Source: Zygnema circumcarinatum SAG 698-1b (Eukaryota > Plantae > Zygnematophyceae). Taken from it: a DNA stretch of 64,000 nucleotides. This document shows, piece after piece, positions 9,995 to 54,000 of the stretch (its first letter is position 1; the number at the start of each line of letters is the position of its first letter). The notes below the pieces were generated by a model. It was not told the origin of the DNA, ran no database searches, and saw only the letters and a list, made by a program, of their open reading frames with translations. The translations under genes and the position numbers were made by a program. The DNA is taken from the NCBI GenBank assembly GCA_037447605.1, contig CM074817.1, positions 1,612,001 to 1,676,000 on the forward strand, given 5' to 3'.

Positions 9995-12088
9995 CTAGCC
10001 CAGATAGCCAACCAGCTCTCCGCCTGTCTGCGCGAGCCACGTGTCCTCTAGAAGCTCCGGCGCAGTGAGGCGGCTCGCCGGGTCCGCCACTAGGAGCTTC
10101 CGTACGAGGCGGCGCGCCGCGGGGGAGACTTCGCCCCAATGGCGGGCCGCGAACCGAACCTTCGCGGCGCGGATTCGCTCGAAAATGGCGGAATCCGAGT
10201 CGCCGAAGAAGGGGAGCATGCCGGAGAGGAGGACGTAGAGGACCACTCCGAGACTCCACATGTCGGCTTCTTTGCCGTACTTCCCTCCGTTTACGACTTC
10301 CGGAGCGAAGTAAAATCTGCAAGAAAAGAAAGTAACAGCGATCGGTTTGAGAATTCGTTTATTTTGTTAAGATGAGTTGAATCGTGGATTGTTTCGATGC
10401 CGTTTTTTTGAGGTGAATTGGAGGCGGAAGATGAGAGAGAAGAGAGAGAGAGAGCGAGGGGGAATAGAGGTGGGAGAGTGCGTACGGAGAGCCGGCAATT
10501 CCTCTTGTTCGTTGGCGCGGCTCGAGGTACACAGCGAGGCCGAAGTCGCAGAGTTTGACTCGAGTGCGGTGCGGCTCGCGGGGGTCCGGCGGGGCCACAA
10601 GGAGAATGTTCTCCGGCTTAAGGTCCCTGCCGGTCCATGCAGCCACAGGTTGGGAATTAGTTACAGATGAATCGTACAAGTTATTAGCAGCTTTCTTCCT
10701 TCGCCCGCCCTCCTACTCTCTCTCCTTCCTTTCTTTCCATCAATCCCATCCTCTTTCCCCCCCCCCTCCTTCCTTCCTCCCTCCCTCTTTTCGCCCTCCC
10801 TCCTCCCCGCCCTCCCGCTTTGCACGCCTTTCCTTCCTCCCTTCTCTTCCTCTCTCTCCCTATCCGCATCCCATTAACCCCTAACCATCTCCTCTCACTT
10901 CCACCCTCCCTTCCCCCCTTCCCCTTCCTCCACACTCAATCCTTTCTCCGCCGTCCCTGCCACCCCTCCCCCTTCCTCCCTGCCCCCCTCCCTCTCTCTC
11001 CCTTCCTCCCTGCCCCCCTCCCTCTCTCCTCCCTCCCTCCCTCCCTCCCTCCCTCCCTCCCTCCCTCACCTATGCATGACCCCCTGCGCGTGCATGTGCC
11101 TCACTCCCTCCGCAATCTGTCTGAACAGCCCCGCCGCCTCCTCCTCCGGGAACCGCTTCCTCCTCAGAATGTGTGAACTCAGGCTCCCTCCCGCGCAGAG
11201 CTCCATCAGCATGTGGACCACCCCCCCGTCCCGATACACGCCCTCCAGCGCGCAGATGTTCGGGTGCCCCCCCACCCTCCGCATCAGCGCTATCTCCCTC
11301 TCCACATCCGCCGCCGCCCGGGACCGCGCAACGCTTTTACATGCTCTCCGTTCGCCCGTCAAACGGTCCACCCACACCGTCACAACCCCAAAGTTGCCCC
11401 TCCCGAGGACGATGCCCGTCGCCTCATATCGGCCTCGCGACCTGCCCTGAACCCCACGGGGAGGGAGAGAGTCGGCGCGGAGGGAGTTTTCTACCAGCAC
11501 GCCTCCGCCTTCTTGGGCCTCTACGTCCCTGATCACAGCTATCTCCTCGCGCTGCCTATGACACCTGCTATTTGGGGCTCTCTCTCGCACTCGCACACGC
11601 TCTCTCTCTCTCTCTTTCTCTCTCCCCCCTCTCTCACATCTCTCCGGCTCCGTCTTCTCCTTGAACCCTCCCTCAGGAGTACCACATTTCCGGCTGCTCT
11701 CCCGCCGCCTCCTCCCTCCCTCTGCCTCCCTCCGCAGAAGCTTCAGCAAGTCCTCCTCCGACTCCGCCCGGCGGTGGCCCACACTCCCCCCCTTCAACTT
11801 TAGCCCCAAATCGACCAGCCGTACATTCTTTTCCAAAGCCTCTCCCGCGGTGTGAGTTTGTATTTCAGTAAAGGCGCAGTCCTCGGGAGAGGTTCTCGAG
11901 GTTCTCTCTCCCTCCCTCCCTCTCTCTCCCTCTCCCTCTCCCTCTCCCTCTTCCTCCTCCTCGTCCTCCCGGAGGCCTCCTCCTGCCGCGCACAGCCTCA
12001 GCCTCAGCCGCGCCCTCCGGAAGCTTCCCGGAACCTCCCGCGAGTCCTCGGGCGAGCCGGGCGCCACGCGGCCCACTCGGTTGCCCAT
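9995..12088 (-). CDS. CDPK-superfamily Ser/Thr kinase lacking EF-hands (PEPKR/CRK-like); exons 12088-11070, 10626-10486, 10316-9995 (493 aa)
   Basis: Motifs LGRGNFG, ACK, HPNI, MELCAGG, HR|DLKPEN, DFG, GSP|FYFAPE, DMWSLGVVLYVLLSGMLPF are present. A stop comes shortly after subdomain XI, so there is no calmodulin-like domain. The protein starts MGN. Confidence 0.85.
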
Positions 12089-12979
12089 CGCGGGGGGGGG
12101 CCCAAGCGCGCGGGAAAATTGAGAGAGAGAGAGAGTGAGAGAGAGAGAGAGGGCGAGAGGGAGAGAAAAAAGGTGAGAGGGAGTGAGAGAGGGCAAGAGG
12201 GGGGGAGAGAGGGGTGCGAGGAGAAGGCCGAGGGAGGGCGGTGTCGGCGCAGAGAGGGAGACCGGAAAGTGACAAACAGCCGGCTCCAGGTAAGTGGACG
12301 TGGGCGGGCGGCGGCACGAGCACTCGACACGTGTCGAGCGTTTTCCATCGTTCTGAGCCGCCAGGTACGGACGGTCGTGTCGGTGCCCACAGACGGCGCC
12401 CTGGGGCCGTGGGGCGCAGGACGGCCCCAGAAAACGACAGATCGATCGGCGTCCGCTCGTCGAATCTGAGCGTATCTATATTTGGCGCAATCGGTCCGTC
12501 CGAGATAGCCGTTATGGGAGGGCGCGCGAAAAGGACACTGCTGAAAGGTCGCCGTACATAGAATCTTAAATTTTGCCAGCTGGCTCAGATCCTCTCCCGA
12601 GATGTTTCCCTCCACGCGGCGTCTGTGGCGGAGCCATAACCGCGCCAGAGATCTTTTTGGGTCCCCTGCCAGCTGGCGATTGTCGGCCCGTAAATGCGCC
12701 AGATCCGCGGCGGGCCGAGGCGGCGGCGCATGGGACAGCCTTAGGGCCGCGGCCGGGCCCGCCCGGCGACCGGGCGGCAGGGGGAGGGAGGGGCCGGGAT
12801 AGGTCGGTGGGAGGGACCAGTATAGGTCGGTGTGCCGGCTGACGCGAGGCGTGTGCGAGGACGTCGAGGGACGAGGGGGCGTAAGCATGACGCCAGCATT
12901 AGTGGCTGTTTTGGAGGGTAGGGATTGGTCTGGTACTGTACGTAACGACAAATAACCGTACATATTGGGATGTGCCCCT

Positions 12980-13500
12980 TGTAGCACAAGATAAGTGGGG
13001 TTAAGAGAAGACTGCTGAGCTAGTTGCAGGTGCTGTACGGCCACTCGCGCGTCCGTGCTGAAACTAATGAAGGGTTGGGTTGGTGCTGTGGGTCTGCCTG
13101 CAGCATAGAGCCAGGATCCGGGAGATTCAGAGGTACGCGCAGCGGAAGACGTAGGGATCCCGAAGATGTTCCCACCGGCGGCTGGTCTCGATGTGCAAAG
13201 AGCCCTTCCTTGGGGGCTCTCTTCCCCTGTCCTCTCCTCGGCTATTCTCTTAGCTAGGCTTCTAGTTATCATCGGTCATTGGGATGAGCGTAAGGCAGAA
13301 TAGGACAAGATGGTAGCTTGGCATAGTGACAGCAAAGGGAAAACAGTACTCAACTTAGATAAAGGTTGTATTTTGGAAAGTCACCCCAGCCAGCGGTTGG
13401 CTGGGGATAGTCATTACAATGAAAGGATCTTCTCACTGAAATCTTTGTCTAGCTGGGCTGAATGGGACGTCTAAATGCTATCAGCAAGACGACTCTTTCT
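12980..13500. mobile_element. Truncated, diverged LTR of the same family as the LTRs at 15291 and 20283
   Basis: Starts TGTAGCACAAGATAA like 15291. Shares GAAACTAATGAAG, CTAGTTATCAT-GGTCATTGGG, the CCCCAGCCA hairpin and GCTGGGCTGAATGGGA-GTCTAAATGCTATCAGCAAGA in colinear order, then runs into the tandem array. Confidence 0.85.
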
Positions 13501-14209
13501 CTCTCTCTCTCTCTCTATCTATGGCATGGAACTCTCTCTCTCTCTCTCTCTATCTATGGCATGGAACTCTCTCTCTCTCTCTATCTATGGCATGGAACTC
13601 TCTCTCTCTCTCTATCTATGGCATGGAACTCTCTCTCTCTCTCTCTATCTATGGCATGGAACTCTCTCTCTCTCTCTATCTATGGCATGGAACTCTCTCT
13701 CTCTCTCTATCTATGGCATGGAACTCTCTCTCTCTCTCTATCTATGGCATGGAACTCTCTCTCTCTCTCTATCTATGGCATGGAACTCTCTCTCTCTCTC
13801 TATCTATGGCATGGAACTCTCTCTCTCTCTCTCTATCTATGGCATGGAACTCTCTCTCTCTCTCTCTATCTATGGCATGGAACTCTCTCTCTCTCTCTAT
13901 CTATGGCATGGAACTCTCTCTCTCTCTCTATCTATGGCATGGAACTCTCTCTCTCTCTCTCTCTCTCTATCTATGGCATGGAACTCTCTCTCTCTCTCTA
14001 TCTATGGCATGGAACTCTCTCTCTCTCTCTATCTATGGCATGGAACTCTCTCTCTCTCTCTATCTATGGCATGGAACTCTCTCTCTCTCTCTCTCTCTAT
14101 CTATGGCATGGAACTCTCTCTCTCTCTCTCTATCTATGGCATGGAACTCTCTCTCTCTCTCTATCTATGGCATGGAACTCTCTCTCTCTCTCTCTCTATC
14201 TATGGCATG

Positions 14210-14246
<37 letters not shown>

Positions 14247-14997
14247 GGCATGGAACTCTCTCTCTCTCTCTATCTATGGCATGGAACTCTCTCTCTCTCT
14301 CTATCTATGGCATGGAACTCTCTCTCTCTCTCTATCTATGGCATGGAACTCTCTCTCTCTCTCTATCTATGGCATGGAACTCTCTCTCTCTCTCTATCTA
14401 TGGCATGGAACTCTCTCTCTCTCTCTATCTATGGCATGGAACTCTCTCTCTCTCTCTATCTATGGCATGGAACTCTCTCTCTCTCTCTATCTATGGCATG
14501 GAACTCTCTCTCTCTCTCTATCTATGGCATGGAACTCTCTCTCTCTCTCTATCTATGGCATGGAACTCTCTCTCTCTCTCTCTATCTATGGCATGGAACT
14601 CTCTCTCTCTCTCTCTCTCTATCTATGGCATGGAACTCTCTCTCTCTCTCTATCTATGGCATGGAACTCTCTCTCTCTCTCTATCTATGGCATGGAACTC
14701 TCTCTCTCTCTCTATCTATGGCATGGAACTCTCTCTCTCTCTCTATCTATGGCATGGAACTCTCTCTCTCTCTCTATCTATGGCATGGAACTCTCTCTCT
14801 CTCTCTATCTATGGCATGGAACTCTCTCTCTCTCTCTCTATCTATGGCATGGAACTCTCTCTCTCTCTCTATCTATGGCATGGAACTCTCTCTCTCTCTC
14901 TATCTATGGCATGGAACTCTCTCTCTCTCTCTATCTATGGCATGGAACTCTCTCTCTCTCTCTATCTATGGCATGGAACTCTCTCTCTCTCTCTCTT
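13501..14997. repeat. Compound minisatellite: 46 copies of ATCTATGGCATGGAAC separated by (TC)n; unit 31 bp, with variants of 33-43 bp
   Basis: Counted by eye: of 45 inter-unit distances, 33 are 31 bp, six 33, two 35, two 37, one 39 and one 43. No substitution was seen in the core. Confidence 0.97.
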
Positions 14998-15000
14998 TAG

Positions 15001-15140
15001 CGGATGGTGTCTTGTTCAGTGGAGCGCAGCACATGGCGCGCCTTCATTCTCAGTGGCGACTCACGGATTCCGCTGATCCGTGACACGGAAGAGGCATATG
15101 TCAAGTACAACTGAACGGGCGCGGATCCGTTGAACGCAGC
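15001..15140. mobile_element. Diverged remnant of retroelement internal sequence homologous to 16140-16290
   Basis: Colinear shared blocks: TTCAGTGGAGCGC vs TTCCGTGGAGCGC, CTCACGGATT, GGCATATGTCAAGTACAA vs GGCATATATCAAGTACAA, and GATCCG. Confidence 0.6.

Positions 15141-27174: not shown

Positions 27175-27182
<8 letters not shown>

Positions 27183-27228
<46 letters not shown>
27183..27228. repeat. (CT)n microsatellite just upstream of the SemiSWEET-like copy 1 start
   Basis: A pure CT run directly visible in the sequence. Confidence 0.9.
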
Positions 27229-27231
<3 letters not shown>

Positions 27232-27263
27232 GCTGCCCTCCTCTCGGCACGAGTGGAGGGAGG

Positions 27264-27851
27264 ATGGACGTGTACCAGGTGCTGGGGCTCATAGGGGGCT
27301 TCATGTTCCCTATCGCGACTGCCGCGCAAACGTGGAAGACGATTGCAACGCAGTCCGCAGAAGATATCAGCTACGGCTGGTAGGCCTCCTCCCTCCCTAA
27401 GCTGCTCAACATCGCAAAGGATCTCGAGACTCCGCCTTCAAGTTTGAGCTCAGAAGCTATCTTGGATTGGTGCATGAAATTGAGGGTAAGCAGGAGCTTC
27501 CATGACCTTCCTTCCGCACGTTTTGTTTTCCCAGCTTCCCGGTTCGCTCACCCTTATCCTTCCACTCTCCCCCCCTCCCTCCCTCCCCCCCTCCCCTCTT
27601 TTCTTTTCTTTTGGTGCTGCAGGCAATTCTTATATGCGATAGCGGAGTCTCTGTACATCATTTATTCGTGGCACTTTCGATTGTGGGCCTTCTTCATCCC
27701 GTGTGTGACGGAGCTCTCTTTTATGGTCGTCATGATTTTGGCGAAATTTTACTTTGAAAATGTGCGCCCCGCATTGTTAGGGAGAAAAGCAGAGCGCAAT
27801 ATCGCTCTCACATCGAGCGAGCCCTTGCATCCGCAAGAGACCCATCCCTAG
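27264..27851 (+). CDS. SemiSWEET/PQ-loop-like single-repeat (3-TM) membrane protein, copy 1; exons 27264-27379, 27623-27851 (114 aa)
   Basis: MDVYQVLGLIGGFMFPIATAAQTWKTIATQSAEDISYGW|QFLYAIAESLYIIYSWHFRLWAFFIPCVTELSFMVVMILAKFYFE. It has three hydrophobic segments and the KT..T.S..DIS loop typical of SemiSWEET/MtN3. Confidence 0.75.
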
Positions 27852-28608
27852 GGCCCCATCTTGCCTCGAAACATAGCGTCTTTATCCCCGACTTAGCATT
27901 TTTTTTTTCAAATTTATTATGTTAAGTAGACGGTATTACCTAGAACAGGAAAAACTTCGTTTGCAAGTCAAAAATATTTTATCCATGCATTCGTCGTTTC
28001 AATAAGCCACGGACCCCCGTGGAAACTCTTTGTTTCAAAGATTTCTCTGTTTGTTGCCTCCGTTTTTTTCATCTTCCTTATGAAGTCATCAGTTGGTTTG
28101 TTGCTTATTTGAGCCTGAGCCTGTCCTCCGATAAGTAAGTTTGACCCCTCCCGTAAGCACTCGTGTGAGGCTCAAAACTGAGATATGTTCTTCAAGCTTC
28201 CTCAAGCAGCTGAGTTTGGAAGGGTGTGAAAGGTTATAAATTAATCTGCGTTCTTTATAAATATGCAGGGGACAATCAAAATGTCATTTATTTACTCTAT
28301 GACAGCTTCTACAGTGGAAACTACGATGGAGTGGCCGCACCTTCCACTTCACTCCTACTTTCTCTGTCTCTCCCTTCTATCTCGTCTCCCTCTCTCCCTC
28401 TCTCCCTCTCTTCCACTCCAAGCTTTGTCTAAACATTTTTTTGCAAAATTACCTGATTTTTCAGCGCAAAACTATCACAAACTATCACCATCTCTAACAA
28501 ATTACAATGTGTAAAGTCAACAGCTCACCCTAATGCCGTAGAGCGCTTATTAAATAGGAAAAAAATGGTCGACAGAGCCCCCTCATGCAGCTAACTTGCA
28601 GCCTCTCT

Positions 28609-29393
28609 TCAGACGGATGAATTCTGCATGGTTTGAAGTTCTTTAACCGCCGCCATCTCATCCTTCTTCTCATCCGTCTTCTCAGTTTCTATGACTTCCA
28701 CGAACTCGGGCTTTTCTTCATCCTCTCCCTCCTCTCCTGGCGTTTCAGTTGCTGCGCTGGCCCTCAAACCATCGTATTTGATCTTCATAACTATGAGCAA
28801 ACTTAGTAGAATGCCATCAGCCAACATGGGAAACAAAATCGGCCACAGCCTGTACGCTATGCTGTATGTTACGATGAGACTGAGGCCAACAACAAATAAT
28901 GCTTGCCTGCAAGAACGAGCAGGAAAAAAACCATACATTAGGTCACAGGTACCGCCAGCGACAAAGATAATAATTAAAGCAATTCCTTCCGCTTCCCTAA
29001 AACGCGTCAAACAACATTCAGCATCGCTGTCCTAAAAAAAACAGGGGGCAACAGTATCTCGCAAGGACCCCCTGCTTAAGAAGTGAACAATTTGACCTTT
29101 TCATGTGCAGAAAAATCAAGAAAAAGGAGCAGCAAGAGCTCCGAAATTCCCTGTCGACTCACTCCCCTCCCTCCCCCCGACCCCAGAACCTCCAAACCTC
29201 CTTCCAACGTCCTTCAAGCCCTAAAAATTCCATGGAAGAAGCGGCCTCACCAGACATAGCTCAAATCTTTCGCGGACTTGGTGCGATACGTCTTGATGAC
29301 CTGCGGCACCGTCGACAATGGGAACACGATCCCTCCCAGCAGGCCGCATATGGAATAAAAATTGTTGAAATCCGACTCTTCTCCCACCGCCAT
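28609..29393 (-). CDS. SemiSWEET/PQ-loop-like single-repeat protein, copy 2; exons 29393-29251, 28906-28609 (146 aa)
   Basis: ...GLLGGIVFPLSTVPQVIKTYRTKSAKDLSYVW|QALFVVGLSLIVTYSIAYRLWPILFPMLADGILLSLLIVMKIKYD, followed by an acidic tail. It has a PQ motif and the same phase-2 intron inside the Trp codon as copy 1. Confidence 0.82.
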
Positions 29394-30869
29394 CTCCCCC
29401 TTCAGAGTCTCTACCTCCTCTCCCCTCCCCTCCCTCCTCTCCTCTCCTCCCCTCCCGCCACACAGCTCTCTCTCCCCTCTCACTCTTTCTCCTCTTTCTC
29501 CCTCTCTCTCCTCTCTCTCCTCTCCCTCTCTCCTCTCTTCCTTCCCCCCTCTCTATCTCCTCTCGTCTTCCCGCTCTCCAGTTAGGCGCCGTCCGTGATG
29601 GTGTCTGTACGTTTTTTTTTCCAAATTTGCACCATTTCCCGAGAAAAAAAAAAATCATTTGATTTGCTGTGTGCTCCCACCGCCATCCGCTAACAGCACA
29701 TTGCAGACGTCAGCGTAATCCCCGCAGCCAATCAGGAGGCCCCGCCCGTCTGCCGCCACTCCTGTCGTTTGAAGCCAAGCGGTGAGCCATCGTATCGCCA
29801 TATCGGTGACATATCATATCGTACCGTATCGGGTATTTGAGCTCAGCCTCGTCCCTGCCACGGAAACTACTACTGTACTGTACCCTTACTTTTGTGCTTC
29901 GGTCCTTTGGCCCAGTTAGTTCCTCGTGGTTCCCATGCTGATGTTGTCAATGTGCATTTGATGGCATCGCAATCGTGAGATCAATGCCACATACTTTCAC
30001 CGTGCTCAAAAGGAGACATGAAAGTTGAGCCTGGACGTACCTCTCCGCTCTTACCTTTTTTCTCTTGTCCTTGGGTCCTTTGCGACCAGTTAGTTCCTCG
30101 TGGTTCCCCCATGCTGATTTTGTCCATGCACATTTGATGGCATCATCGCCCGCCATGCGTGAGACCAATTCCCCACATCTCCCCGGCAATTTTGAAGGAG
30201 AAGCATTCCTATTGGCTTGGCGCTGCCCTCCAAGCCGCAAAGAGCCACACGAGCATGGACCAGGAACCACGAGGAGCCAGCCACTCCGCCGCCCGGTCCA
30301 GGGCGGGAGCCAAGAGACGAATGAGGGCAGTGTGCAGACAGACAGACCAATCAAAATTTGCCACGTGGACAGGTATGGACATCTGGCGAACCATCATTGG
30401 CTGACGGTCGCTGACGACCACTGACGAGAGGGAGAAGGAGAGGGAGGGAGAGGGAGAAGGAGAGAGAGGGAGAGGGAGAGGGAGAGGGCGAGGGAGAGGG
30501 AGAGGAGGAGAGCGGATCGCTGTGCTGAACGTGGAAGGGCGAGGCCGGGCGGTGCAGCGAATGGGACCGCGGGTCAAGTTGAGTGATGATTGAGAATATA
30601 AAGTTAGGGCTTGGATAAGTTTCTAGACTGAGTGGATGGAAGAGGGGGGGGGAGGGAGGGAGAGGAAGGGAGAGAGGGAGAGGGAAAATATAGGAATAAG
30701 GGGAGAAAGAAAGGATAGAGGGAGAGAGGGAAAGGATAGGAATACGGGGAGAAAGAAAGGATAGAGGGGGAGAGTGGGAGAGGGAAAGAGTGGGAGAGAG
30801 GAGCGAGAGCAAGGGAGGGAAAGAAAGTGGGAGAGTGAGGAGAGAGGGAGAGGAAAAGAGAGGAAGAGT

Positions 30870-31762
30870 TGTTGGGTAAAATAGGGGTATAGCCTAGAAT
30901 TGTACGCTGTACGGTCCTTAGCCTTTGTCGGCGGTCTTTAGGAGATTTGGTCACAGTCTGAACAGGGCGCTAGGGCGCTGTTCGTAGTGGGAACACGGAA
31001 AGTCTGAGTAGGACACGTGGAGGGCGGCGATAGGCCGCGCCAACACAGGAGTCAGAACTGGTAAGCATAGGTTAGACACGTGGCGCACAGCGATAAGCTG
31101 CGCGGTCAGCTTTGTATTGCTTATTGCTTTAGTGGTCGACCATACATTAGTCCGGTGCGTACGGACGATCGCTGGAGTGGCGCGCGCGTTGTTGAGGAAG
31201 CTTCTCGAAGGTAGGCAAGTCGGAGGAGGAGCTTTCTGTACGGACACTCCCCCTCCTGGCCATGGCGACCTGAGGAGTTACCGCGAGGAGAGGCGAGCGC
31301 CTGGAGATGTGGAGCGTCGCCAGCGACATGGAGGTGCGCGGTGGAACGCGGCGGCGTGCGGTGCAGCGCGGTGGCGAGACATGGCATGCATTAGAACGTG
31401 GAGGAGTAGTGCAGCGCTTAGTACTTAAGTAGAGTTAGGCTTAGGTAATAGTTATCTTAATACAGCTACAGCTTAGCTCGTGTTGCTAAGTGTAGTTGCC
31501 TGACTGTATGGTCAGCAGGAGGTCGGGAGTTAGTCAGAGCTGAAGTAGAAGCCTGAGGGCTGAAACTTGTGCTTGTTACTTCCTTTCTTTATTAAGGAGT
31601 TTTGAGGCCAGGGTGCTTTCTCCTTACTTTTCCTTACGGTGTTTTGCTCGTTTGAATTCAGTTATCTTTCAGTGTGTGCACTTGAGAGCTTTCCTTTGAT
31701 TCAAATTGCAAATATGGCAGTGAGTGAAGTGAGTGAGATGGACCGGGCCTTAATTAACAACA
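30870..31762. repeat. 5' LTR of the copia element (893 bp)
   Basis: Direct repeat of 35724-36623; about 9 substitutions and 2 small indels counted by eye. Confidence 0.95.
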
Positions 31763-31987
31763 GTGGTATCAGAGCGTTTTCCAATGACGAACCCAGGTAT
31801 AGGGTCCCGTTTTTCGAAGGGACAGATTACAGACATTAGAGGTGGAGGATGACGTACCTGTTGGAGAGCAAGGGCCTCTTCAAGTACGTAGACGGGAGCA
31901 CCCCGGAACCACTTTCTCCGGCCGACTCTGAGGGGACGGCGGACGTGAAGGCGTTTGACCTGTGGCAAGTGAAGAACNNNNNNNNNN

Positions 31988-33573
31988 TGCCCATCGTGCC
32001 ATGACCTTCACCGGGTCAGCCAATGGCCACCCAGCAGTTATACTGCTAGATATTGGGGCAGATGCTAACTTTGTTAGTTCTGCGTTCACCCAACGCTTTG
32101 GGTTGACCACTGATCCCCATTCTGAAAGTGTTACTTTCGGGGATGGACGCAAGGGCCAGATCTTTGGTAGCGTCACACTCAAGATCAAGCTCCAGTCCTA
32201 CTCCGGGGCAGTGAAATGTCTACTGACACAACTGGCTCCGGGTAACGATGTTATTTTAGGGAGTGCTTGGTTAACCATGGTCAAAGCCCAATTGGATTTT
32301 TTTCATCCCACACTGCATTCTGCACAGTGGGGATAGGCGCATCACACTGCACCCTGGCAAATCCACAGCCCCTGTTATCACGCCGGTTGATACTCCTTAT
32401 CTCTGCTCGGCTATGCAATTGGCCAAAGCAGTTAAGGAGGGTTGCACCTTGTTCATGGTGCATGTCATGGCAGCCACTGAGGATGTTCATGACGAAGATC
32501 AGGAATGGCAGATCACACCTACGGATGTGCTCTCGGCTGTTCCATCCCAAATCCAACCCTTGTTGGATGAGTTCAGGGATGTTTTCCCTGATGACCTCCC
32601 AAGAGGGTTGCCACCGTCTCGAGGAGTCGGGCACACGATCCCTCTTGAGCCTGAGCAAAAGCTGCCTTGGCGGCCGATTTATCGGTTAAGTCCGAAGGAA
32701 ACCGAGGAAATGCGACAGCAATTAACAACTTTACGAGAGAAAGGCTGGATAGAACCCAGTCAGAGCCCCTTTGGGGCGCCCATCTTGTTCGTTGGGAAGA
32801 AAGATGGCTCGTTGAGGATGTGCATTGATTATCGCGCACTCAACAAGATCACCGTAAAGAACCGTTTTGCTTTACCACGTATTGATGATCTGTTGGATCG
32901 TCTTCACGGCGCCAAGGTGTTTACATCACTTGATCTTGCTCAGGGGTACCATCAGATCCGCGTCACGGAAGCTGATGTGCCAAAAACTGCGTTCCGGACG
33001 CCGATTGGTCATTTCCAATATAAGGTGTTGCCCTTTGGATTGACTAATGCTCCGGCGACTTTCCAGGATGTAATGAACGAGATGTTCATCGGCATGGACG
33101 AGTTTGTTTTGGTTTACCTCGATGATATCCTTGTCTTCAGTAAGACAGAGGAGGAACATCTTGAACACGTTCGGAAAGTGTTTGAGACCCTAAGGAAACA
33201 CCAATTTTATGCCAAGAGGAAGAAGTGTCACTTCATGCAACGTGAGTTGCTTTATCTTGGGCAGATCTTGAATGATCAGGGCCTTCGGCCAGACCCTGCC
33301 AAGGTTTCTGCGGTAGAAACTTGGGCGCCACCGACTGACTTACATCAGTTGCGGTCATTCTTAGGATTTGCGAATTATTTCCGTAAATTCATCCAAGGGT
33401 TTAGTAAGTTGGTTACTCCCTTGACCAATTTGACACGTTCCGGTGTCCCCTTTGTATGGACCCCTGAGTGCCAGGAAGCATTCGAGGGTGTCCGCCATGC
33501 ACTTGTTACCGCACCCACTCTCCGTTTAGCGGACCCGTCCTAACCTTATGAAGTGGTTTGTGATGCTTCGAAT
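31988..33573 (+). mobile_element. Ty3/gypsy pol fragment (protease-RT-start of RNaseH), gap-bounded, inside the copia element
   Basis: ILLDIGADANFVS...ILGSAWL, then a frameshift, then KKDGSLRMCIDYRALN...LDLAQGYHQIR...PFGLTNAPATFQ...YLDDIL, then an in-frame stop before PYEVVCDAS. Confidence 0.9.
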
Positions 33574-35723
33574 NNNNNNNNNNGGGCGAGGGTGACTGTC
33601 GTCACCCAACCAACGTACCGGCATACGGTTGCACCCCTGCCCAGGGCTGCGCCACCCTCTGAAGCTCTCTCTCTCTCTCACTCGTTTTCTTGATTCAGAC
33701 GCTGAGTGCAGGCTGAGGGAGATTCCGCGCACGACCGAGGAGGGATTAGCCCCGCGGTCTGTTACAGAAACATTAACCAATTATATAGTAAAATTTGATA
33801 GCCTTATGCAGAGGTGTGTAGTGGCTAAGCAGCCGATTCCATTACCTAGCAAAATTCACCAATTTCTAGTAGGATTGCCAAGCAAATATGAGGGAATAGT
33901 GGAGTCATTGAGGACTCATCTTTCCAGTTTGCCCATGACCATGGAGCAAGTCAAAGGGAGGATAAGAGAGGCTGACTCACTGTTAGAAAAGGAGAGTTCA
34001 GGTGTAGACAATGTGTTGCTTATCCAGGCTAAGAAAAAGGGGAGGAATGATCGAAGACCCACCCCAACATGTTTTACTTGCGGCAAGCTTGGGCACGTGT
34101 CGACTGACTGCTACCAGAACAAGGGACGACCCGAGAGCTCGGACGAGCCTTCGAGTGAAGAAGAAATCACCGAGAGGTCCACCTTTCGAGGGACCTGCTT
34201 CAAGTGCGGGAAGAAGGGTCACAGAGCCGCTGTTTGTCGAGGCGGCGCTACCGAGATGAACCTAATGATGAGGTTGGGTGCACAGGGTGATTTTGAGAAG
34301 GACGAGTTCGTTGGAGGTGTCCGAGATGTGGAGGTCAAGCTGCCATGTCTCATTGATGCAGGTGCTTCAAAGCATAGGTGCTCTGACAAAACCTTTGGTG
34401 CAGAGCAAAGAAAGATGGTGGCGGCAAGATGTGCCAACGCAAAAACTGGAGAGGGGGTGTACGATTCCCGAGGAGGACGTGTGAAGTTGAAGATTCGAGA
34501 AGGGAAGATGAAGAGGACAATCATCATGGGAGATGTCCTACACACCCTGGGACTTCAACGTGCGTTCGTGGCAGAGGTAGAGTTTTGTACAGATTGCCTT
34601 GCTGGGAAAACTCATAGCCAGCTTTCAAGCCATGGGAGTGAAGAGGAGGGCCGAGCCAAGGAAAGGCTTGAGATGGTCCACACAGATATGTGCAGCCCCA
34701 ATTCTCTTGCTAATTTAGAAGGCTCACAGTTCTTTATTACTATTCTGAATGATTACTCTCGGAAAATTTGGGTCCGAATGCTGGAGAGCAAAGCTGAGTC
34801 CTTTGCTGCATTTAAAGAGTGGCAAGAGGTAGTGGAGCAAGAATCCGGGCTGCAGGTGAAGACTTTTCGATTGGACAGTGAAGGAAATTACATGTCTTAT
34901 GCCGCTCGTGTGTGGGGCTTGAGGTGCTTTGTAAGTGTGATGAAGCACGAGTTTGCAGAGAGGAGCAGAGACTTCGTGCTGCAGGAGAAACAAACAGAGA
35001 AAGGCGACAAGGATTTCGAGGAGAACTTTGAGCCGTGGCCCAATTTCGAAATTACTTTTGGAGCGGACGGTGGCGATTCGGCGATCCTTGGTGGAGAGCC
35101 TGCTTACTTCGAATCCATGGTGGAGATGAGCCGATTGGAGGCGACCGTCGATCAAGCGGACCTTGTGCCGTGTGATGTGATAGAGGAGGAGGAATCAGTG
35201 CCGTTGGATGTGAAGATGGAGTCCGATTCGGAGGGAGCGTCACCGGTCACGCCGTGCTTGACATCTGGACCGTTGATAGGGTTTGAGCCTGCGGCGCCTG
35301 GCGCCACGTCATTAGGTGAGGCCGGACCCTCGGCCGTACCATGTACCTCGGTGGCCGTACAGGAGGAAGGAGAAACCGGAACTGCAACTGACATGGAGGC
35401 TCCGTTGAACAAGGACGCTACTAGAGTCGTTCCATTCTTCGGGATCACGGGGGGACGTGAGCGGAACAATGACGGATGGACAATGAGGATGCCGAACGTG
35501 TCGGCTGACTTCGCTAGCATTGCTGCACTCATGATGGGTAGTGTTGCTGAACCCCAAAACCTGCTTGTAGTTTAAGAGGGGGCGGATGATAGCAATAGGG
35601 AGTAGCCTTGAGTAGTGAGCTGAGGAGTCTCATAGTACCAAGGAAAGATGGATTGCCGTAATAGTATCCTCATAGGCGTAGGAACTTTTGGTTGTTTTGG
35701 GTGGCTAGGACCGAGAGGGGGAA

Positions 35724-36623
35724 TGTTGGGTACAATAGGGGTATAGCCTAGAATTGTACGCTGTACGGTCCTTAGCCTTTGTCGGCGGTCTTTAGGAGAT
35801 TTGGTCACAGTCTGAACAGGGCGCTAGGGCGCTGTTCGTAGTGGGAACACGGGAAGTCTGAGTAGGACACGTGGAGGGCGGCGATAGGCCGCGCCACCAC
35901 AGGAGTCTACTTAGAACTGGTAAGCATAGGTTAGACACGTGGCGCACAGCGATAAGCTGCGCGGTCAGCTTTGTATTGCTTATTGCTTTAGTGGTCGACC
36001 GTACATTAGTCCGGTGCGTACGGACGATCGCTGGAGTGGCGCGCGCGTTGTCGAGGAAGCTTCTCGAAGGTAGGCAAGTCGGAGGAGGAGCTTTCTGTAC
36101 GGACACTCCCCCTCCTGGCCATGGCGACCTGAGGAGTTACCGCGAGGAGAGAGGCGAGCGCCTGGAGACGTGGAGCGTCGCCAGCGACATGGAGGTGCGC
36201 GGTGGAACGCGGCGGCGTGCGGTGCAGCGCGGTGGCGAGACATGGCATGCATTAGAACGTGGAGGAGTAGTGCAGCGCTTAGTACTTAAGTAGAGTTAGG
36301 CTTAGGTAATAGTTATCTTAATACAGCTACAGCTTAGCTCGTGTTGCTAAGTGTAGTTGCCTGACTGTATGGGCAGCAGGAGGTCGGGAGTTAGTCAGAG
36401 CTGAAGTAGAAGCCTGAGGGCTGAAACTTGTGCTTGTTACTTCCTTTCTTTATTAAGGAGTTTTGAGGCCGGGGTGCTTTCTCCTTACTTTTCCTTACGG
36501 TGTTTTGCTCGTTTGAATTCAGTTATCTTTCAGTGTGTGCACTTGAGAGCTTTCCTTTGATTCAGATTGCAAATATGGCAGTGAGTGAAGTGAGTGAGAT
36601 GGACCGGGCCTTAATTAACAACA
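35724..36623. repeat. 3' LTR of the copia element (900 bp)
   Basis: Preceded by the polypurine tract and followed by the TSD AGAGT. Confidence 0.95.
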
Positions 36624-37480
36624 AGAGTGAAGGAAGCAAGATGGGGGGAGGGAGAGGAGAAGATAGAGACTGGGAGGGAAGCGGGAGATAAAGAGTGGGA
36701 GAGAGAGAAATGGGGGAGAAAGGGAGAGAGAGGGACTTGCGTTTACAACGACAGAACTACTTTTTTTTAAAGATGTATAACGTACAACACATGACTTCCT
36801 CCCCAAAGTTCCTGCGGTGACAACGAGAAGGAAAGACTACACATTCTAGGTCTAAAAGAATAGCATGCATGCATGTTGCTTGCAGTAACTTCAACAGCTC
36901 CTCGAAAAATGTGACAAGCACCGCAAGCAGGCATACTGGGTGTCAAAACTGTAAGCCGTTAATTAAAGCGCCGTAAAAATGTTTAACAAAGACCTCTGAT
37001 TCAGTCAACCACTCTACACCAACTATCTGTTTCAGATAAGAAAAGCTTCACACGAGTGAGCTTTGCCTGGCTAGATTTAATGCCATCACTAGTTTGCATC
37101 GCCTTCCCCGCATCTGCCTTTGTCGAATTCGGTTCTTTCCCGGAGTTTAAGTGACCTCCTTCCACAGCTTTCAGAAGCCGCACTTCTTCCACATAAGACT
37201 CTTTGGGAGTTGTACGCGTGAAGCTCAAACCGTCCAATATTATTTTCCTCTCTCTCGCTTTTTGTACAAGCTCTCGCAGACCCTCCTAATATTTCAGTGA
37301 AAAATCACCACAGCTAAGCTCTTATCACAACTATCACTGGCGACAGGTTTGCCATATCAAACAAATTATAAACTGTTTAATCAGAAGCTCTCGCTAATGC
37401 CACCGATAGCTTTAAACAAAAAATTGGTCGAACACCGCCCCTCATGTAGCTAGCTTGCAGCCGGTCCCCATATCAGAATT

Positions 37481-38465
37481 TCACACGGGTGATTTCTGCA
37501 TGGCCTGACCTTCTTCGCTCGCCGCCATCGCCCCCCTCCCATCCGTCGTCTTCTTGTTTTTTTGTATGTTTTCAACGAATTCAAGCTTCACTTCATCTTC
37601 TGGTTTCGAATGCTCTTCTTTATCCTTCTCCTCCGCAGCAGCAGCAGCAGCAGATGGTCCAATTGGTCCATTTGGAGGCGTTTTGGTTGCTCTGGACCTA
37701 AAACCGTCATATCTGATTTTCATAATTATGAGCGAACTCATAAGAAAGACGTCAGCAATCATTGGAATCAGAACAGGCCACAGAGTGTAGGCGAGTCCGT
37801 ATATTGCGACGAGGGCGAAGCCGACAACAAAAAGTGCTTGCCTGCAAAAAACGAGCAGGACAATGCCATTCAGTAGACTTCAGATATCATCAAATGGCCC
37901 GGATCAAGACTAGCAGTTTTCTTCCTGGTTTGAACCATTCTATCCAGCACTTCTTCGCATTCAAGAGTGCTAGAGTAAGAGTACTTCAAATATTGTAAAT
38001 GTATATTTAGTAAGAAAGTTATCAAGCAGAAAATGATTTCCCGGCGTGTAATCCGCTTCACATTGCTCGTTTACGAAAAAAATATAGGCCACATATGACC
38101 TTCCTACGTCTGACTATTAATAGAAGTGAAAATTCCAGTATTATAAATTTTTCATACGCAGAAAAACAAGAAAAATGATTAGCAAGAGCCCCGAAATCCC
38201 ACATCGTACAACTGTCGACCCACTCCCTCCTTCCCCCCAACTTCAAGAACCTCCAAACCTTCTTCCAACCTCCTTCCAACGTCCTTCAAACCCTAAAACC
38301 TCCATAGAAGAATCGGCCTCACCAGACATAGCTCAAATCTTTCGCGGACTTGGTCCGATACGTCTTGATGACCTGCGGCACCGTCGACAATGGGAAGACG
38401 ATCCCTCCCAGCAGACCGCATATGGAATAAAAATTGTTGAAATCCGAAGCTTCTCCCACCGCCAT
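37481..38465 (-). CDS. SemiSWEET/PQ-loop-like single-repeat protein, copy 3; exons 38465-38323, 37841-37481 (167 aa)
   Basis: Exon 1 is almost identical to copy 2. Exon 2 reads QALFVVGFALVAIYGLAYTLWPVLIPMIADVFLMSSLIIMKIRYD plus a hydrophilic tail. The intron position is the same. Confidence 0.82.
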
Positions 38466-39145
38466 CTTCCCCTTCAGATTCCTTCCCTCCTCTCCCCTCC
38501 CTCTCCTCCCTCCTCTCTCTCTCCCTTCCCCTCCCCTCCCTCCCTCCCCTCNNNNNNNNNNTCAGAACAGAGCTTCTCTAGACGCTCTTTCTCCCTCTCA
38601 CCCGGTGGCTGACGGACGGACGGACGGACTGCACGATTGACCGTACACTCTCAGCCGTCCTTGCACATTTTCGTACGCGTATGTCACAGCCGTCGCCCTC
38701 GGTCCGTAACGCACCGACACTCCAATGACGTGTCACGCTGCGCATGCGCCACGTGGCTGAGGGCCACGCTGGCAAAGTCCATGGCGCGGCACCGCGGCCG
38801 GCGTGCAGGGCGGCCGCCGGCCAATGCCGTGCGGACCGGAGGGGCGACCGGCGAATCTGAGCACGCCACGTGACGTGGATACGCGGCGGTAGGGGATTGA
38901 AGTCAATGGCGCCCCCGGAGCCTGGACGTCACGTGGCAGCTGCTGGATGTGACGGTGAGGACTCGTGTCGCTTGCTGGTTCGCTGGGGCTTGCCTCGAAC
39001 TGTCCGTCAGCGGGCGACGCGGCGTGTCGTGTATGGGGAGCGAGGTCGTTTCAACCGTTCGCACGTGCGAAATTATGTTCACCACGTGAGCCTTCAACTA
39101 ATAAATATCTAAATGTATGAAGTGCTTGAAAAATCTGAAAATATT

Positions 39146-50087: not shown

Positions 50088-51031
50088 TGGTCTCTCACTT
50101 TTAAGGTCGTACCCATGTAGGGAAATTGGGATATATTTGTTTATTTTTATATTTGTCAGCAGTGCCGAAGGTAACCGCTATTGTAATCCTCCCTCCGCCT
50201 GTGAAACAATCCATGCAGTGACATGTAGTTGGGGGAGGAGGAGGGTGCAACTTGAGGGTCACGTGTCGCTTTTTTGCAGCTTGTAGGGATATTTACCACT
50301 TTGGCCCTTTCCATTCATAGAACATTCACAGTGCGGAATAGCATCATTGCACAGGTCGAACCTTTGGATCAACCATTGGCAATGATTGCCAGTCATTGAT
50401 TCACGAAACAACCAACCATTGCCAATGGATAGGGATTTTCGTCATATATTTTGCTTTTCAGGTCCCCTTGCAACATATTTCTTAAAGCTCGGTGCTTCCT
50501 GTAACTAGACCGGGATTTAGTCTCACCCCTTGATCTCTCAAAGACCAGCCATCCAGCTTCCAACAGTGCCTCAGTCGTGAAAACCGCCGGTTCCTTGCAG
50601 ATCCTTTGTGGGCGATTTGTTTCTCGTGGTTCCCCATGTTGACTTTCTGCGTGTGCATGTCATTCGATAAGGGTCATGCGTCACGTCACGTCACATCACG
50701 TCTTGCCATATCGCGATCACGGCGAGTCGGGCGAACAGCATACCGCAGCAACGCAACACGTCGGCGCCACGTCGGCGCCACGTCGACACCACGTTGGCCT
50801 AAAGGAGACTGAGCACGCGACGGCGCGCACAGCGGTAAACCTCTCGTCCTAAACCGAGACGGCCACGTGGCGACACGTGATTGGACAATTTTCACATTAC
50901 GTACTGTACTGTAAAAGATGTTCCGTGCCGTACAGTACGGCTACACAACCATTTTTTCTGAGAAGCCCTGGGCTGGCCTGGCCTCTCCTGGAGCCCAGAG
51001 GGAGGGAAGGAGGAAAGTTGTAGGCTGCAGT

Positions 51032-54000
51032 ATGACTTCGGCGCAGGGGAAAGGTAGGCTTTCTCCTGGAAGCGAGAGAGATCGCGCTCCGTTCTCTGGA
51101 GAGCGGTTTGACGAGCTTAATGCCGCTTTCAGTCGTGGAAGAGGGGCCGGAGGGGTGGAGGAGTCGGACTCTTCGTCCTTGCTTGGCGCAGATGCGAGCA
51201 GGAGTGGGGAAACGGAGGGGAAGGATACGAGACGGAGTGGGGCTGGAGAGAGAGAGAAGGGCGATGTTAGGGCATTTGAGGTAGACGGTGAGGAGCCTTT
51301 GCAGCGTGATGCAAGCTGGAAGTTTTGGAATGGTGGCTTATTGAAGCAGTTACTCAGATGGTTGAGATGTTGGAAGTGCATATTAAATGCAGATAGAAAT
51401 ACAATATGGACTATAGCAGGGCCAGCATTGGCGCTGTTTGTCCTATTTTTTGGAAGCTCCATGTCAAGCAACAGGGAAGTGCCACGCATGCTGGCGGCTT
51501 TGTTGTGGATGGCCACGTGGTGGCTCACAGAGCCTCTTCCTATTGCGGTCACTTCCCTTCTCCCTCTCGCGCTCTTCCCTTTCTTAGAGCTAATGGAGGC
51601 GTCCGAAGTGGCGAAGTCTTATGTGAATGATACCATTGTTTTGTTCATAGGTTCCTTCATGCTGGCTCTTGCTGTTGAAAAATTCAACATACACAAGCGG
51701 TTGGCTCTTAAGGTCTTGCTGCTTTTAGGGCCAAGAGGGAGAACGCAGGGCATGGACCCACGCCTGCTTCTGTTAGGGTTTGTTCTCGGCCCCGGACTAA
51801 TTTCCATGTGGATAAACAACACTGCCACTGCCATTATGATGGTCCCTATGGCAGTTGGTGTACTTCATAAAGTTCAAGCAAGAATGTCTACTTCTGATGG
51901 CCAAATTCACTATGAAGCGAGCTGCCAGGCTCACCTGCAACCGGACGACGAGCTCCTCCGAGCTACTGAAGAAGCCAGGGGAATTTTCGCATCTTCTTCC
52001 GAGCTGCCAGTGCAGCGTGTGCCAGACGAAGCGGATACAAGCGAGACTGAAGCAAGACTCAATATGTCCCAAACTAGACGACCTGCATCTGCTGTAGCAG
52101 CCGCCAGGTCAGCGGAGACTGACCAGGAAGAATTGGGACTGGGCCGTCCTGACAAGGTTTCCAAAGTCCAATCTGTGGACCGTTTTCAGAATGTGTCTCC
52201 CAGTCTTGCCGCTGCTCAGGATCAAGTAGAGGAAACCACCATTCTTGTGAAAAATTCGTCTGGAAAAGAAGATCCTGAAGGCAGTGTGCAAGCCTCTTCA
52301 GACCACGTTCAGGAATTCAGCAAAGGTGTGGTGCTGGCAATTGCGTTTAGTGCATCGATTGGGGGAATAGCAACAGTCATTGGCACGGGGCCCAACCTCG
52401 TTCTCGCAGGGGTTTGGAGACACTTGTTCCCGGATGCGCCCCCCATCACATTCATGGACTGGTTCATGTTTGGCGCTCCGCTCTCGGGGGTGTTCCTTCT
52501 TGCTCTCTGGGGGCTACTCTGTGCTTGGTATTGCCCGCCGAAGGCAGTTCTCTCAATCTCAGCAGCTCTCGACTTGAGAGTGGTGGAGGATGAATATGCG
52601 CAGTTAGGTGAGGGGTCTGCTGCTTTTGCTTAAGTAGGGGTTGCAAGGTGGAGCAATGTTGGTAGCGCCTTTATGAAGTGACTTAAAGGTGTCTTGTGGA
52701 AGGTGTCTCTCTTAGGGAGAGATGTTTGTTGTTAGGACCACTTTTTGGGTCGGAAGTTCAAAAAGTGCATTCTGGGAATGGACAATAATCAGCTGGTAGG
52801 CGGTTGCAAATCACTGATATGCATGCACCACATATAGTACATTCCTATTGACACTATGTGCCCTCCGGCTCTCGCCCCAGCTAAATAGTAACAGTTGCTG
52901 AACCCCTTTTCTAGCGAAATTATGAATTTTGTAGGATGCAGAGGCGAAATTACATAAATGTGGAGATGGTTCTAGGGCTTAGGGCCATTTATGCACTTGC
53001 CATGTAGAACAAACACCTGTCACGAAATAGCCATTAAAGTTCATGATGTTGCAAAGTCAACATGAACTGCAAATTCTCTTCATTTCTTTTTTTACCTTTT
53101 TAACGTACTCACAGCATTCGATAACGAGCGAAGTCCATAGGAACAGTATACGTTAGGGAGGACGTTAAGTTAGAGTGGTTTGCTGTATGTAAATCTGCTG
53201 CCTGAGTTTTCTGTTGGCGTCATACCTTTTCCCTTCATGCAACTATATCCCATGCCTTATTTCAGACTGCAGCTCAAGGCGGACATACCTCTGTGTCTAT
53301 TGCAGGTCCCATCTCTTTTCCCGAGGGCGTTGTTCTGATTGACTTCGGGGTGAGTGTATGGGGCTGAGAGCCTCCGTTAGGGCCTGTTGCTGCGGACCAC
53401 TACTCTCTGCAGAGTCTCTCAGCTCCACTCTCACTTCCGCGTGCTCTCCTCTGCAAGTTCTGCCTGGGGTGGGCTCCGCCACAGCAATCCATGTAGACAT
53501 TGCACTGCATAGAATTTCAGTTCTATACTTGCCCTTAGAGTTCAAGCTGCTTATTTCAGCATGTCTTACTTCAAGCAGCTTCGACATATGCAGGAACGGA
53601 CGTTATTGCCATTGCGAAGCCTAACTGGGGTCTGGCGCATTGCTTAGGTGCTCATGCAGTTTCTCCTGCACTTCTATTGAGGTCGTTGGGTAACAGATGC
53701 AGATATATGTAGGTAGTTCGCATTGTAAACTAGTGTGATTTCTATCAACTTTCAGATATAGCATTCGAGGCATAGATGTTGTGTTCCTTCTGTAAGAGTT
53801 GCTTGTATGCATACGATCATGGCATACCGATCGATAGTCACAGGTTGCATGTTTGCTATTCTGGAATGGCAGGTCACACCCCTAATTTTGAACCTTCTTT
53901 TAAGTGATGTTTGGGCAGGTCCTTGCTTTGCTTTGGATGACACGCTCTCTCGGCACAGAAGAGGAGGACATTGGTGGTTGGGATGATATTTTCCACGATC

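Follow-up and report, generated by a model that had tools for sequence, protein, structure and literature searches.

Three intron-containing, single-repeat SemiSWEET-type genes clustered in the streptophyte alga Zygnema circumcarinatum

No transporters smaller than the SemiSWEETs are known. They are regarded as an essentially prokaryotic type, the eukaryotic counterparts being fused proteins of seven helices. Here we describe a cluster of three genes, g1, g2 and g3, that each encode a single three-helix repeat of this type in the zygnematophycean alga Zygnema circumcarinatum SAG 698-1b. The cluster lies in a stretch of 64,000 nucleotides (GCA_037447605.1, contig CM074817.1, positions 1,612,001 to 1,676,000 of the forward strand), the whole of which we refer to as the window and from whose first letter all coordinates are counted. 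The closest described proteins are the bacterial SemiSWEETs of Thermodesulfovibrio (4RNG), E. coli (4X5M/4X5N), Leptospira (4QNC) and Bradyrhizobium (9KAX), which form the same single three-helix bundle of about 85 residues. They have in common with the window genes a K-x3-T-K-S-x2-D/G-x-S loop, Gly46, Tyr53 and the K-x-x-Y end of helix 3, and they align to them without gaps and superpose on their predicted fold at about 1 Å. The P-Q hinge in helix 1 of the bacterial proteins is found only in one of two subfamilies described below (A), the hinge Pro being absent in the other (B). Unlike the bacterial SemiSWEETs, the window genes are eukaryotic and intron-containing, encode C-terminal tails and fall in a separate clade. 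Their proteins also lack the Trp50/Asn66 pocket and carry an acid at position 69, and g2 scores below the cut-off of the curated SemiSWEET_2 model.

Among eukaryotic proteins, the mitochondrial pyruvate carrier subunits MPC1 and MPC2 likewise have a small SemiSWEET-like fold, and these two diverged paralogues function together as a heterodimer; they are the model for the possible pairing of A with B that is considered below. They differ from the window genes in giving no sequence match and in a more distant structure (template modelling (TM) score about 0.65-0.78, 10-18% identity). Cystinosin, PQLC2/Ypq and the SWEETs belong to the same superfamily and to the same PQ-loop Pfam model as the window genes, but are built from two fused repeats and a linker helix where the window proteins have a single repeat. 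In some of the seven-helix PQ-loop/SWEET members, acidic residues along the pathway serve to handle protons or cations. Single-repeat semiSWEET genes are also listed for two giant viruses of algae, ChrysoHV and co-PelV, and the closest relative of the ChrysoHV semiSWEET in its authors' phylogeny is reported to be eukaryote-derived (10.1101/2025.06.17.660233, PMC12338748).

Three spliced genes of the SemiSWEET type

We rebuilt the spliced reading frames by script and obtained three two-exon genes (Table 1), each ending in a stop codon, with products of 114 (g1), 146 (g2) and 167 (g3) amino acids. All three introns run from GT to AG; as an earlier reading of the DNA by itself (hereafter the sequence-only reading) had noticed, they are in phase 2 and interrupt the Trp codon after S-Y-x. 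The hydropathy profiles show hydrophobic segments compatible with three helices, and three helices are present in the AlphaFold models. The helices are followed by a C-terminal hydrophilic tail; that of g1 is short, whereas those of g2 and g3 are longer and acidic. A tblastn search with the three proteins against the whole window matched g1, g2 and g3 only and found no second triple-helix repeat; therefore, none is available for splicing. Together, these results bear out the earlier description of three genes with one repeat, a hydrophilic tail and a stop. g1 and g2 are convergent, tail to tail, with 757 bp between their stop codons. The base composition of the cluster is unremarkable compared to the rest of the window, and exact-sequence look-ups of the spliced g1 and g2 proteins returned no record. 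A longer N-terminus for g1, starting at an in-frame ATG at 27099 and adding 55 residues through a CT microsatellite, was considered and set aside; the orthologues start at the position of the ATG at 27264.

Spliced g2 matched the Pfam PQ-loop model (PF04193) at 34 bits, and exon 1 of g2 and exon 1 of g3 each reached 27.5 bits (gathering threshold 22). In the same kind of hidden Markov model (HMM) search, MtN3_slv (PF03083) gave no match for spliced g2, so that only the first half of the label "PQ-loop/MtN3 repeat" that had been given to these genes can be kept. The exon pieces of g1 had no match to Pfam PQ-loop, and the g1 orthologues carry no precomputed Pfam domain. Instead, g1 is tied to the family by its profile scores, at 129.5 bits on the profile of subfamily B, 76 on that of subfamily A and 43 on a bacterial SemiSWEET profile. 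The NCBIfam model SemiSWEET_2 (NF037968) aligned to g2 over its full 76 positions (E 2.8e-12, 46.6 bits), and the seven-helix PQ-loop type TIGR00951 gave a weak match only (E 0.004).

Comparison with solved structures led to the same family. A relative from Mesotaenium matched solved bacterial SemiSWEETs, with 4RNG at E 1e-8, and a profile of 23 family members matched them without gaps (4RNG 1.8e-18, 9KAX 5.5e-14, 4QNC 4.3e-13, 4X5M 3.7e-11). AlphaFold models built with family alignments had a predicted local distance difference test score (pLDDT) of 94-97 for the core of g2 and of 91-98, with a mean of 93, for g1. The top Foldseek matches of both models were SemiSWEETs, with 4RNG at a TM score of 0.93 by target and a root-mean-square deviation of 1.1 Å for g2 and 1.0 Å for g1. 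Structures of MPC (at the TM scores given above), cystinosin (0.21 by target) and SWEETs were well behind.

Two other assignments were rejected. Membership of the MPC family, which the sequence-only reading had named among the results that would count against it, finds no basis in sequence, as the Pfam MPC family is not among the matches of spliced g2, and the structural likeness is weaker than that to SemiSWEETs. An origin from a seven-helix SWEET is countered by the presence of one bundle per gene, the lack of an MtN3_slv match for g2 and the lack of a second repeat in the window. By sequence and predicted fold, g1, g2 and g3 are of the SemiSWEET type, and the proposal of half-size, single-repeat SemiSWEET-type genes that expanded locally in a eukaryote is upheld by the sequence and fold match to the bacterial proteins. 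Our full reading, which we consider probable, is that the locus holds three intact, spliced genes for membrane proteins with a single triple-helix bundle of the SemiSWEET/PQ-loop type, and that these would act as dimers in the transport of a small solute, probably other than a canonically bound sugar.

Pocket residues, hinge and predicted transport

The cluster contains one B-type gene and two A-type genes. The g1 protein is 50-53% identical to a group of Closterium and Coleochaete proteins that defines subfamily B. On the profile of subfamily A (Closterium, Mesotaenium and two transcript-derived sequences), g2 and g3 reach about 150 bits, compared to 85-90 bits on the B profile. In the tree, B was supported at 100/98, A at 82/89 and A+B, together with one environmental sequence, at 83/76; an approximately unbiased (AU) test did not reject A+B as one clade (p = 0.45).

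Since the alignments to E. coli SemiSWEET are gapless, its numbering can be used for the window proteins, where g1 positions have the E. coli number and g2 and g3 positions the E. coli number plus 9. In E. coli SemiSWEET, Trp50 and Asn66 line the sugar pocket and Pro21 is the hinge of the binder-clip motion, with the P21A mutation nearly abolishing transport (Lee et al. 2015, PMC4309421). The equivalent of Trp50 is Ile59 in g2, Val59 in g3 and Tyr50 in g1, and that of Asn66 is Met75 in g2 and g3 and Cys66 in g1. In the family consensus, Leu occupies both of these positions. At position 69, which is Thr in E. coli and lies one helical turn from Asn66, we observed an acid in all three proteins (Asp78 in g2 and g3, Glu69 in g1). 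Among 153 aligned proteins, 116 have Glu and 6 have Asp at this position. A Gracilibacteria protein carries the acid as well, which is therefore not confined to eukaryotes.

The hinge separates the two subfamilies. g2 and g3 retain the Pro21 equivalent within a V-P-Q-V motif, whereas g1 and all B orthologues have A-A-Q or G-A-Q, so that Ala stands for the hinge Pro in every B protein (g1, Coleochaete and three Closterium strains). The B proteins also have in common an Ala where Gly46 would be expected, a Glu or His next to it at position 47, a Tyr at position 50 and, following helix 3, the motif Y-F-[DE]-N.

The analysis establishes how the genes are built, to which family and fold they belong, where they fall in the tree and which residues they carry, and from these we infer dimerisation, topology, transport and substrate class. 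As in the solved SemiSWEETs, two three-helix protomers would pair to form a six-helix transporter, in which bending of helix 1 at its P-Q motif would switch the protein between an inward-open and an outward-open state. The positively charged, K/R-rich loop between helices 1 and 2 and the C-terminal tail would lie on the cytosolic side. By this analogy, the proteins are most likely dimeric transporters of a small solute. Because the Trp/Asn pocket is replaced and the helix-3 acid is conserved, the cargo is probably not a sugar bound in the canonical manner. The conserved buried acid suggests cation or proton coupling, and a cationic solute or proton coupling would be the most economical guess.

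Several points weigh against this reading. The 46.6 bits of g2 are under the cut-off of 80 that NCBI curates for SemiSWEET_2. In E. coli SemiSWEET, sucrose transport survives the W50A mutation (PMC4309421), and loss of the Trp by itself therefore does not exclude sugars. The conserved helix-3 acid could be structural rather than substrate-related. Dimerisation and transport of g1-g3 are predicted by analogy, and the case for their expression draws on one run of uncertain type, described below, and on sequence conservation.

Of the alternative readings, the one that fares best is an obligate heterodimer of A and B comparable to MPC1/MPC2, in which the hinge-less B would be the asymmetric half and the convergent g1 and g2 would encode the partners. 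It is plausible by analogy, and we hold it tentatively, as possible though not favored. The replacement of the hinge Pro by Ala in all B proteins, along with their own conserved changes, fits such an arrangement, as does the severe effect of P21A in E. coli (PMC4309421). Both subfamilies are present in the Zygnema genome and in Closterium, and in the window g1 and g2 are adjacent and tail to tail. However, in Closterium the A and B genes sit on separate contigs, where a search of the surrounding 10 kb found no partner, and A/B adjacency is therefore not a conserved feature. Co-occurrence is seen in two lineages only, and B could act as a homodimer with a different hinge. A more specific version, in which streptophyte algae keep a two-gene SemiSWEET system of hinged A and hinge-less B that forms an asymmetric heterodimer with an acidic pocket for a cationic or proton-coupled substrate, appears unlikely to us at present.

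We regard it as somewhat less likely still that the genes encode ordinary sugar-transporting SemiSWEET homodimers that happen to reside in a eukaryote. The overall fold and motifs are those of sugar SemiSWEETs, and relatives are annotated as "MtN3 and saliva related" or SemiSWEET in their source records. On the other hand, neither the Trp nor the Asn of the pocket is present in g1-g3 or in the family consensus, g2 lacks an MtN3_slv match, and the family stands apart from the named bacterial SemiSWEETs in score against the family profile (87-150 bits for members versus 75 or less) and in the tree.

Relatives, intron age and origin

Word-index protein searches with g2 exon 2 and with a 90-residue core found no relatives. 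An exhaustive HMMER search with the g2 core returned 731 proteins at E <= 0.001, 69 of them at E <= 1e-10. Identity reaches about 50% in the best of these, and almost all of the proteins have a single repeat and a length of 85-200 residues. The named relatives come from Closterium strains, Mesotaenium endlicherianum, Coleochaete scutata, the raphidophyte Heterosigma and one MMETSP transcript, and many more are unnamed marine and freshwater metagenome sequences. Land plants were not seen among the named matches listed. Subfamily A occurs in Closterium and Mesotaenium, and subfamily B in Closterium and Coleochaete; the Coleochaete scutata relative is a transcript with a complete open reading frame (ORF) and one repeat only. 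In the tree, a prokaryotic clade of bacteria, Gracilibacteria and Nanoarchaeota was separated from the clade with the window genes at 99/97 support.

A family member was also found on metagenome contigs resembling those of giant viruses (L003:8605-8979 and L004:4573-4947), with dense small genes on both strands. Its neighbors include genes for DnaJ, RING, a dual-specificity phosphatase, a 5'-3' exonuclease and a pyrophosphatase. An Atlas lead also pointed toward a Nucleocytoviricota-rich cluster. Scans of viral contigs with single family proteins gave no matches. A scan with an alignment (A2) gave 23 loci, and the translated matches inspected mostly lacked the helix-3 acid. Five of these viral loci were placed in a first tree, where one (L027) fell in the bacterial clade and four were unresolved or long-branched inside the large clade. 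On a Logan contig (L005:8976-10891), at least three single-repeat PQ-loop genes of the family follow one another head to tail beside a gene for a 2242-residue EF-hand protein; tandem arrays of this SemiSWEET-type family therefore recur. Taken together, the comparisons place the window genes, as far as sequence can tell, in an old algal and giant-virus branch separate from the bacterial SemiSWEETs.

The literature held no paper that we found to describe this family of streptophyte algae, and SemiSWEET and streptophyte algae appeared together in one incidental co-mention only. Eukaryotic SemiSWEETs with three transmembrane helices (3-TM) are mentioned in passing (PMC5742349), and a green-algal study flagged two single-bundle proteins as possibly partial (PMC9520054). 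The sequence-only reading had listed, among the results that would refute it, a well-known single-repeat eukaryotic family with published descriptions across streptophytes. A family spanning streptophyte algae does exist; a description of it was not found.

To date the intron, proteins were threaded onto genomic loci. Closterium is the only other genome in which the structures of both an A and a B gene could be read, and its A gene (L001) and B gene (L029) have the identical phase-2 intron in the same Trp codon. A Heterosigma gene has an intron at another position. The intron in both Closterium genes implies that it predates the A/B duplication, and the presence of A and B in both Zygnema and Closterium implies that this duplication predates the split of these lineages. 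The common intron and the orthologues in Closterium, Mesotaenium and Coleochaete identify the genes as old residents of streptophyte algae.

The sequence-only reading had suggested either horizontal acquisition or a retained ancestral half-transporter. These data contradict a recent transfer from bacteria or a giant virus with later intron gain and expansion, which we now consider very improbable. Such a transfer would agree with the family member on a giant-virus-like contig, with the Atlas lead and with the semiSWEET genes reported in giant viruses (10.1101/2025.06.17.660233, PMC12338748). It is difficult to reconcile with orthologues in several streptophyte algal classes, with a branching order in B that fits species relationships, with closest relatives that are only about 50% identical and with the unremarkable base composition of the cluster. 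An intron of identical position and phase that is older than both the A/B duplication and the Zygnema-Closterium split rules out that the genes arrived recently and gained the intron afterwards. Genes may still have been transferred in the distant past or exchanged with giant viruses, as one relative is on a giant-virus-like contig.

Local history and surroundings of the cluster

g2 and g3 are direct tandem duplicates on the - strand that were later parted by a young long terminal repeat (LTR) retrotransposon. Between them, the synonymous divergence (dS) is 0.11 in exon 1 and 0.65 in exon 2, the introns are 65% identical, and the overall ratio of nonsynonymous to synonymous substitution (dN/dS) is 0.35-0.40. 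The near-identity of exon 1 next to diverged exon 2 and intron sequences suggests gene conversion of, or very strong constraint on, exon 1. A function for the genes is supported by the intact frames, by dN/dS below 1, by N-termini that agree with those of the orthologues and by the conservation of B-specific residues in Coleochaete, Closterium and Zygnema.

With regard to expression, one run, guessed to be RNA (X1), contained a fraction of 0.56 of the sampled words of 27200-29450 and none of 31 words from the g2 intron (28915-29245). Several runs of undetermined type contained words of both 27200-29450 and the g2 intron. The pattern in X1 is weakly consistent with a spliced transcript.

That g1-g3 might be gene-model artefacts, i.e., fragments or pseudogenes of seven-helix SWEET or PQ-loop genes, is a concern raised by the suggestion that many eukaryotic "3-TM SemiSWEETs" may be partial models, made for two algal cases (PMC9520054), yet we give it next to no credence, as the window has no second repeat anywhere, the 757 bp between the g1 and g2 stop codons leave no space for extra exons, the orthologues are single-repeat, including a complete transcript ORF, and the frames are intact with dN/dS below 1.

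Three assembly gaps are close to the genes. Two are inside the LTR retrotransposon, and the third precedes the start codon of g3 by 87 nt. All exons and introns of g1-g3 are clear of the gaps, and therefore only the g2-g3 spacing and the 5' flank of g3 are uncertain. Long CT/GA-rich low-complexity tracts are found directly upstream of all three start codons and may be a common promoter or 5' untranslated region (UTR) feature. Elsewhere in the window, long ORFs resemble a CitMHS/Na-sulfate-symporter-type transporter, a cytochrome P450 and a protein kinase domain, and are probably exons of adjoining genes. A further region has three overlapping ORFs of more than 500 amino acids in different frames.

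Table 1 Features of the g1-g3 cluster and its surroundings, in window coordinates.
Feature	Position	Strand	Details
g1 exon 1 (subfamily B)	27264..27379	+	start codon, helix 1 (P-Q hinge replaced by A-Q), cytosolic loop, bases 1 and 2 of the Trp39 codon
g1 intron	27380..27622	+	GT-AG, phase 2; position as in Closterium B gene L029
g1 exon 2	27623..27851	+	helices 2 and 3 (Tyr50, Cys66, Glu69), Y-F-E-N juxtamembrane motif, short tail, stop
g2 exon 2 (subfamily A)	28609..28906	-	helices 2 and 3 (Ile59, Met75, Asp78), acidic tail, stop
g2 intron	28907..29250	-	GT-AG, phase 2
g2 exon 1	29251..29393	-	start codon, helix 1 with P-Q hinge, K/R-rich loop
g3 exon 2 (subfamily A)	37481..37841	-	helices 2 and 3 (Val59, Met75, Asp78), longer tail, stop
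g3 intron	37842..38322	-	GT-AG, phase 2
g3 exon 1	38323..38465	-	96.5% DNA identity to g2 exon 1
LTR retrotransposon between g2 and g3	30870..36448	+	LTR copies 30870-31587 and 35724-36448, 98-99% identical
Reverse transcriptase ORF of the LTR retrotransposon	32413-33543		
Zinc-knuckle Gag-like ORF of the LTR retrotransposon	33629-35575		
Assembly gap	31978-31987		inside LTR retrotransposon
Assembly gap	33574-33583		inside LTR retrotransposon
Assembly gap	38552-38561		upstream of g3
CT/GA-rich tract	27175-27235		upstream of g1
CT/GA-rich tract	29400-29480		upstream of g2
CT/GA-rich tract	38470-38550		upstream of g3
Long ORF, CitMHS/Na-sulfate-symporter-type	50918-52633	+	
Long ORF, cytochrome P450	56158-57051	-	
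Long ORF, protein kinase domain	11066-12196	-	
Three overlapping ORFs	13462-15083		more than 500 amino acids each, different frames

The fold, its principle and survey mentions of eukaryotic 3-TM SemiSWEETs were already known, and the gain here is moderate. What the sequence comparisons appear to add is the split into A and B, the shared intron, the conserved helix-3 acid and the loss of the hinge in B, and with these a previously undescribed SemiSWEET branch of eukaryotes and giant viruses that has an altered predicted pocket chemistry and two ancient paralogue types. If an A/B system with an acidic pocket exists, it would represent a new substrate class for the SemiSWEET fold, common to giant viruses of algae. 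Likewise, with a true two-gene A/B system, the "two different halves" stage that has been proposed to precede fusion into seven-helix SWEET/PQ-loop transporters would survive in a present-day organism. In conclusion, half-transporters have persisted unfused in streptophyte algae over a very long period, in the form of two distinct paralogue groups with a common intron, and this system allows one to test how half-transporters pair, whether gene fusion was preceded by an asymmetric pair and what the algal and giant-virus clade carries.

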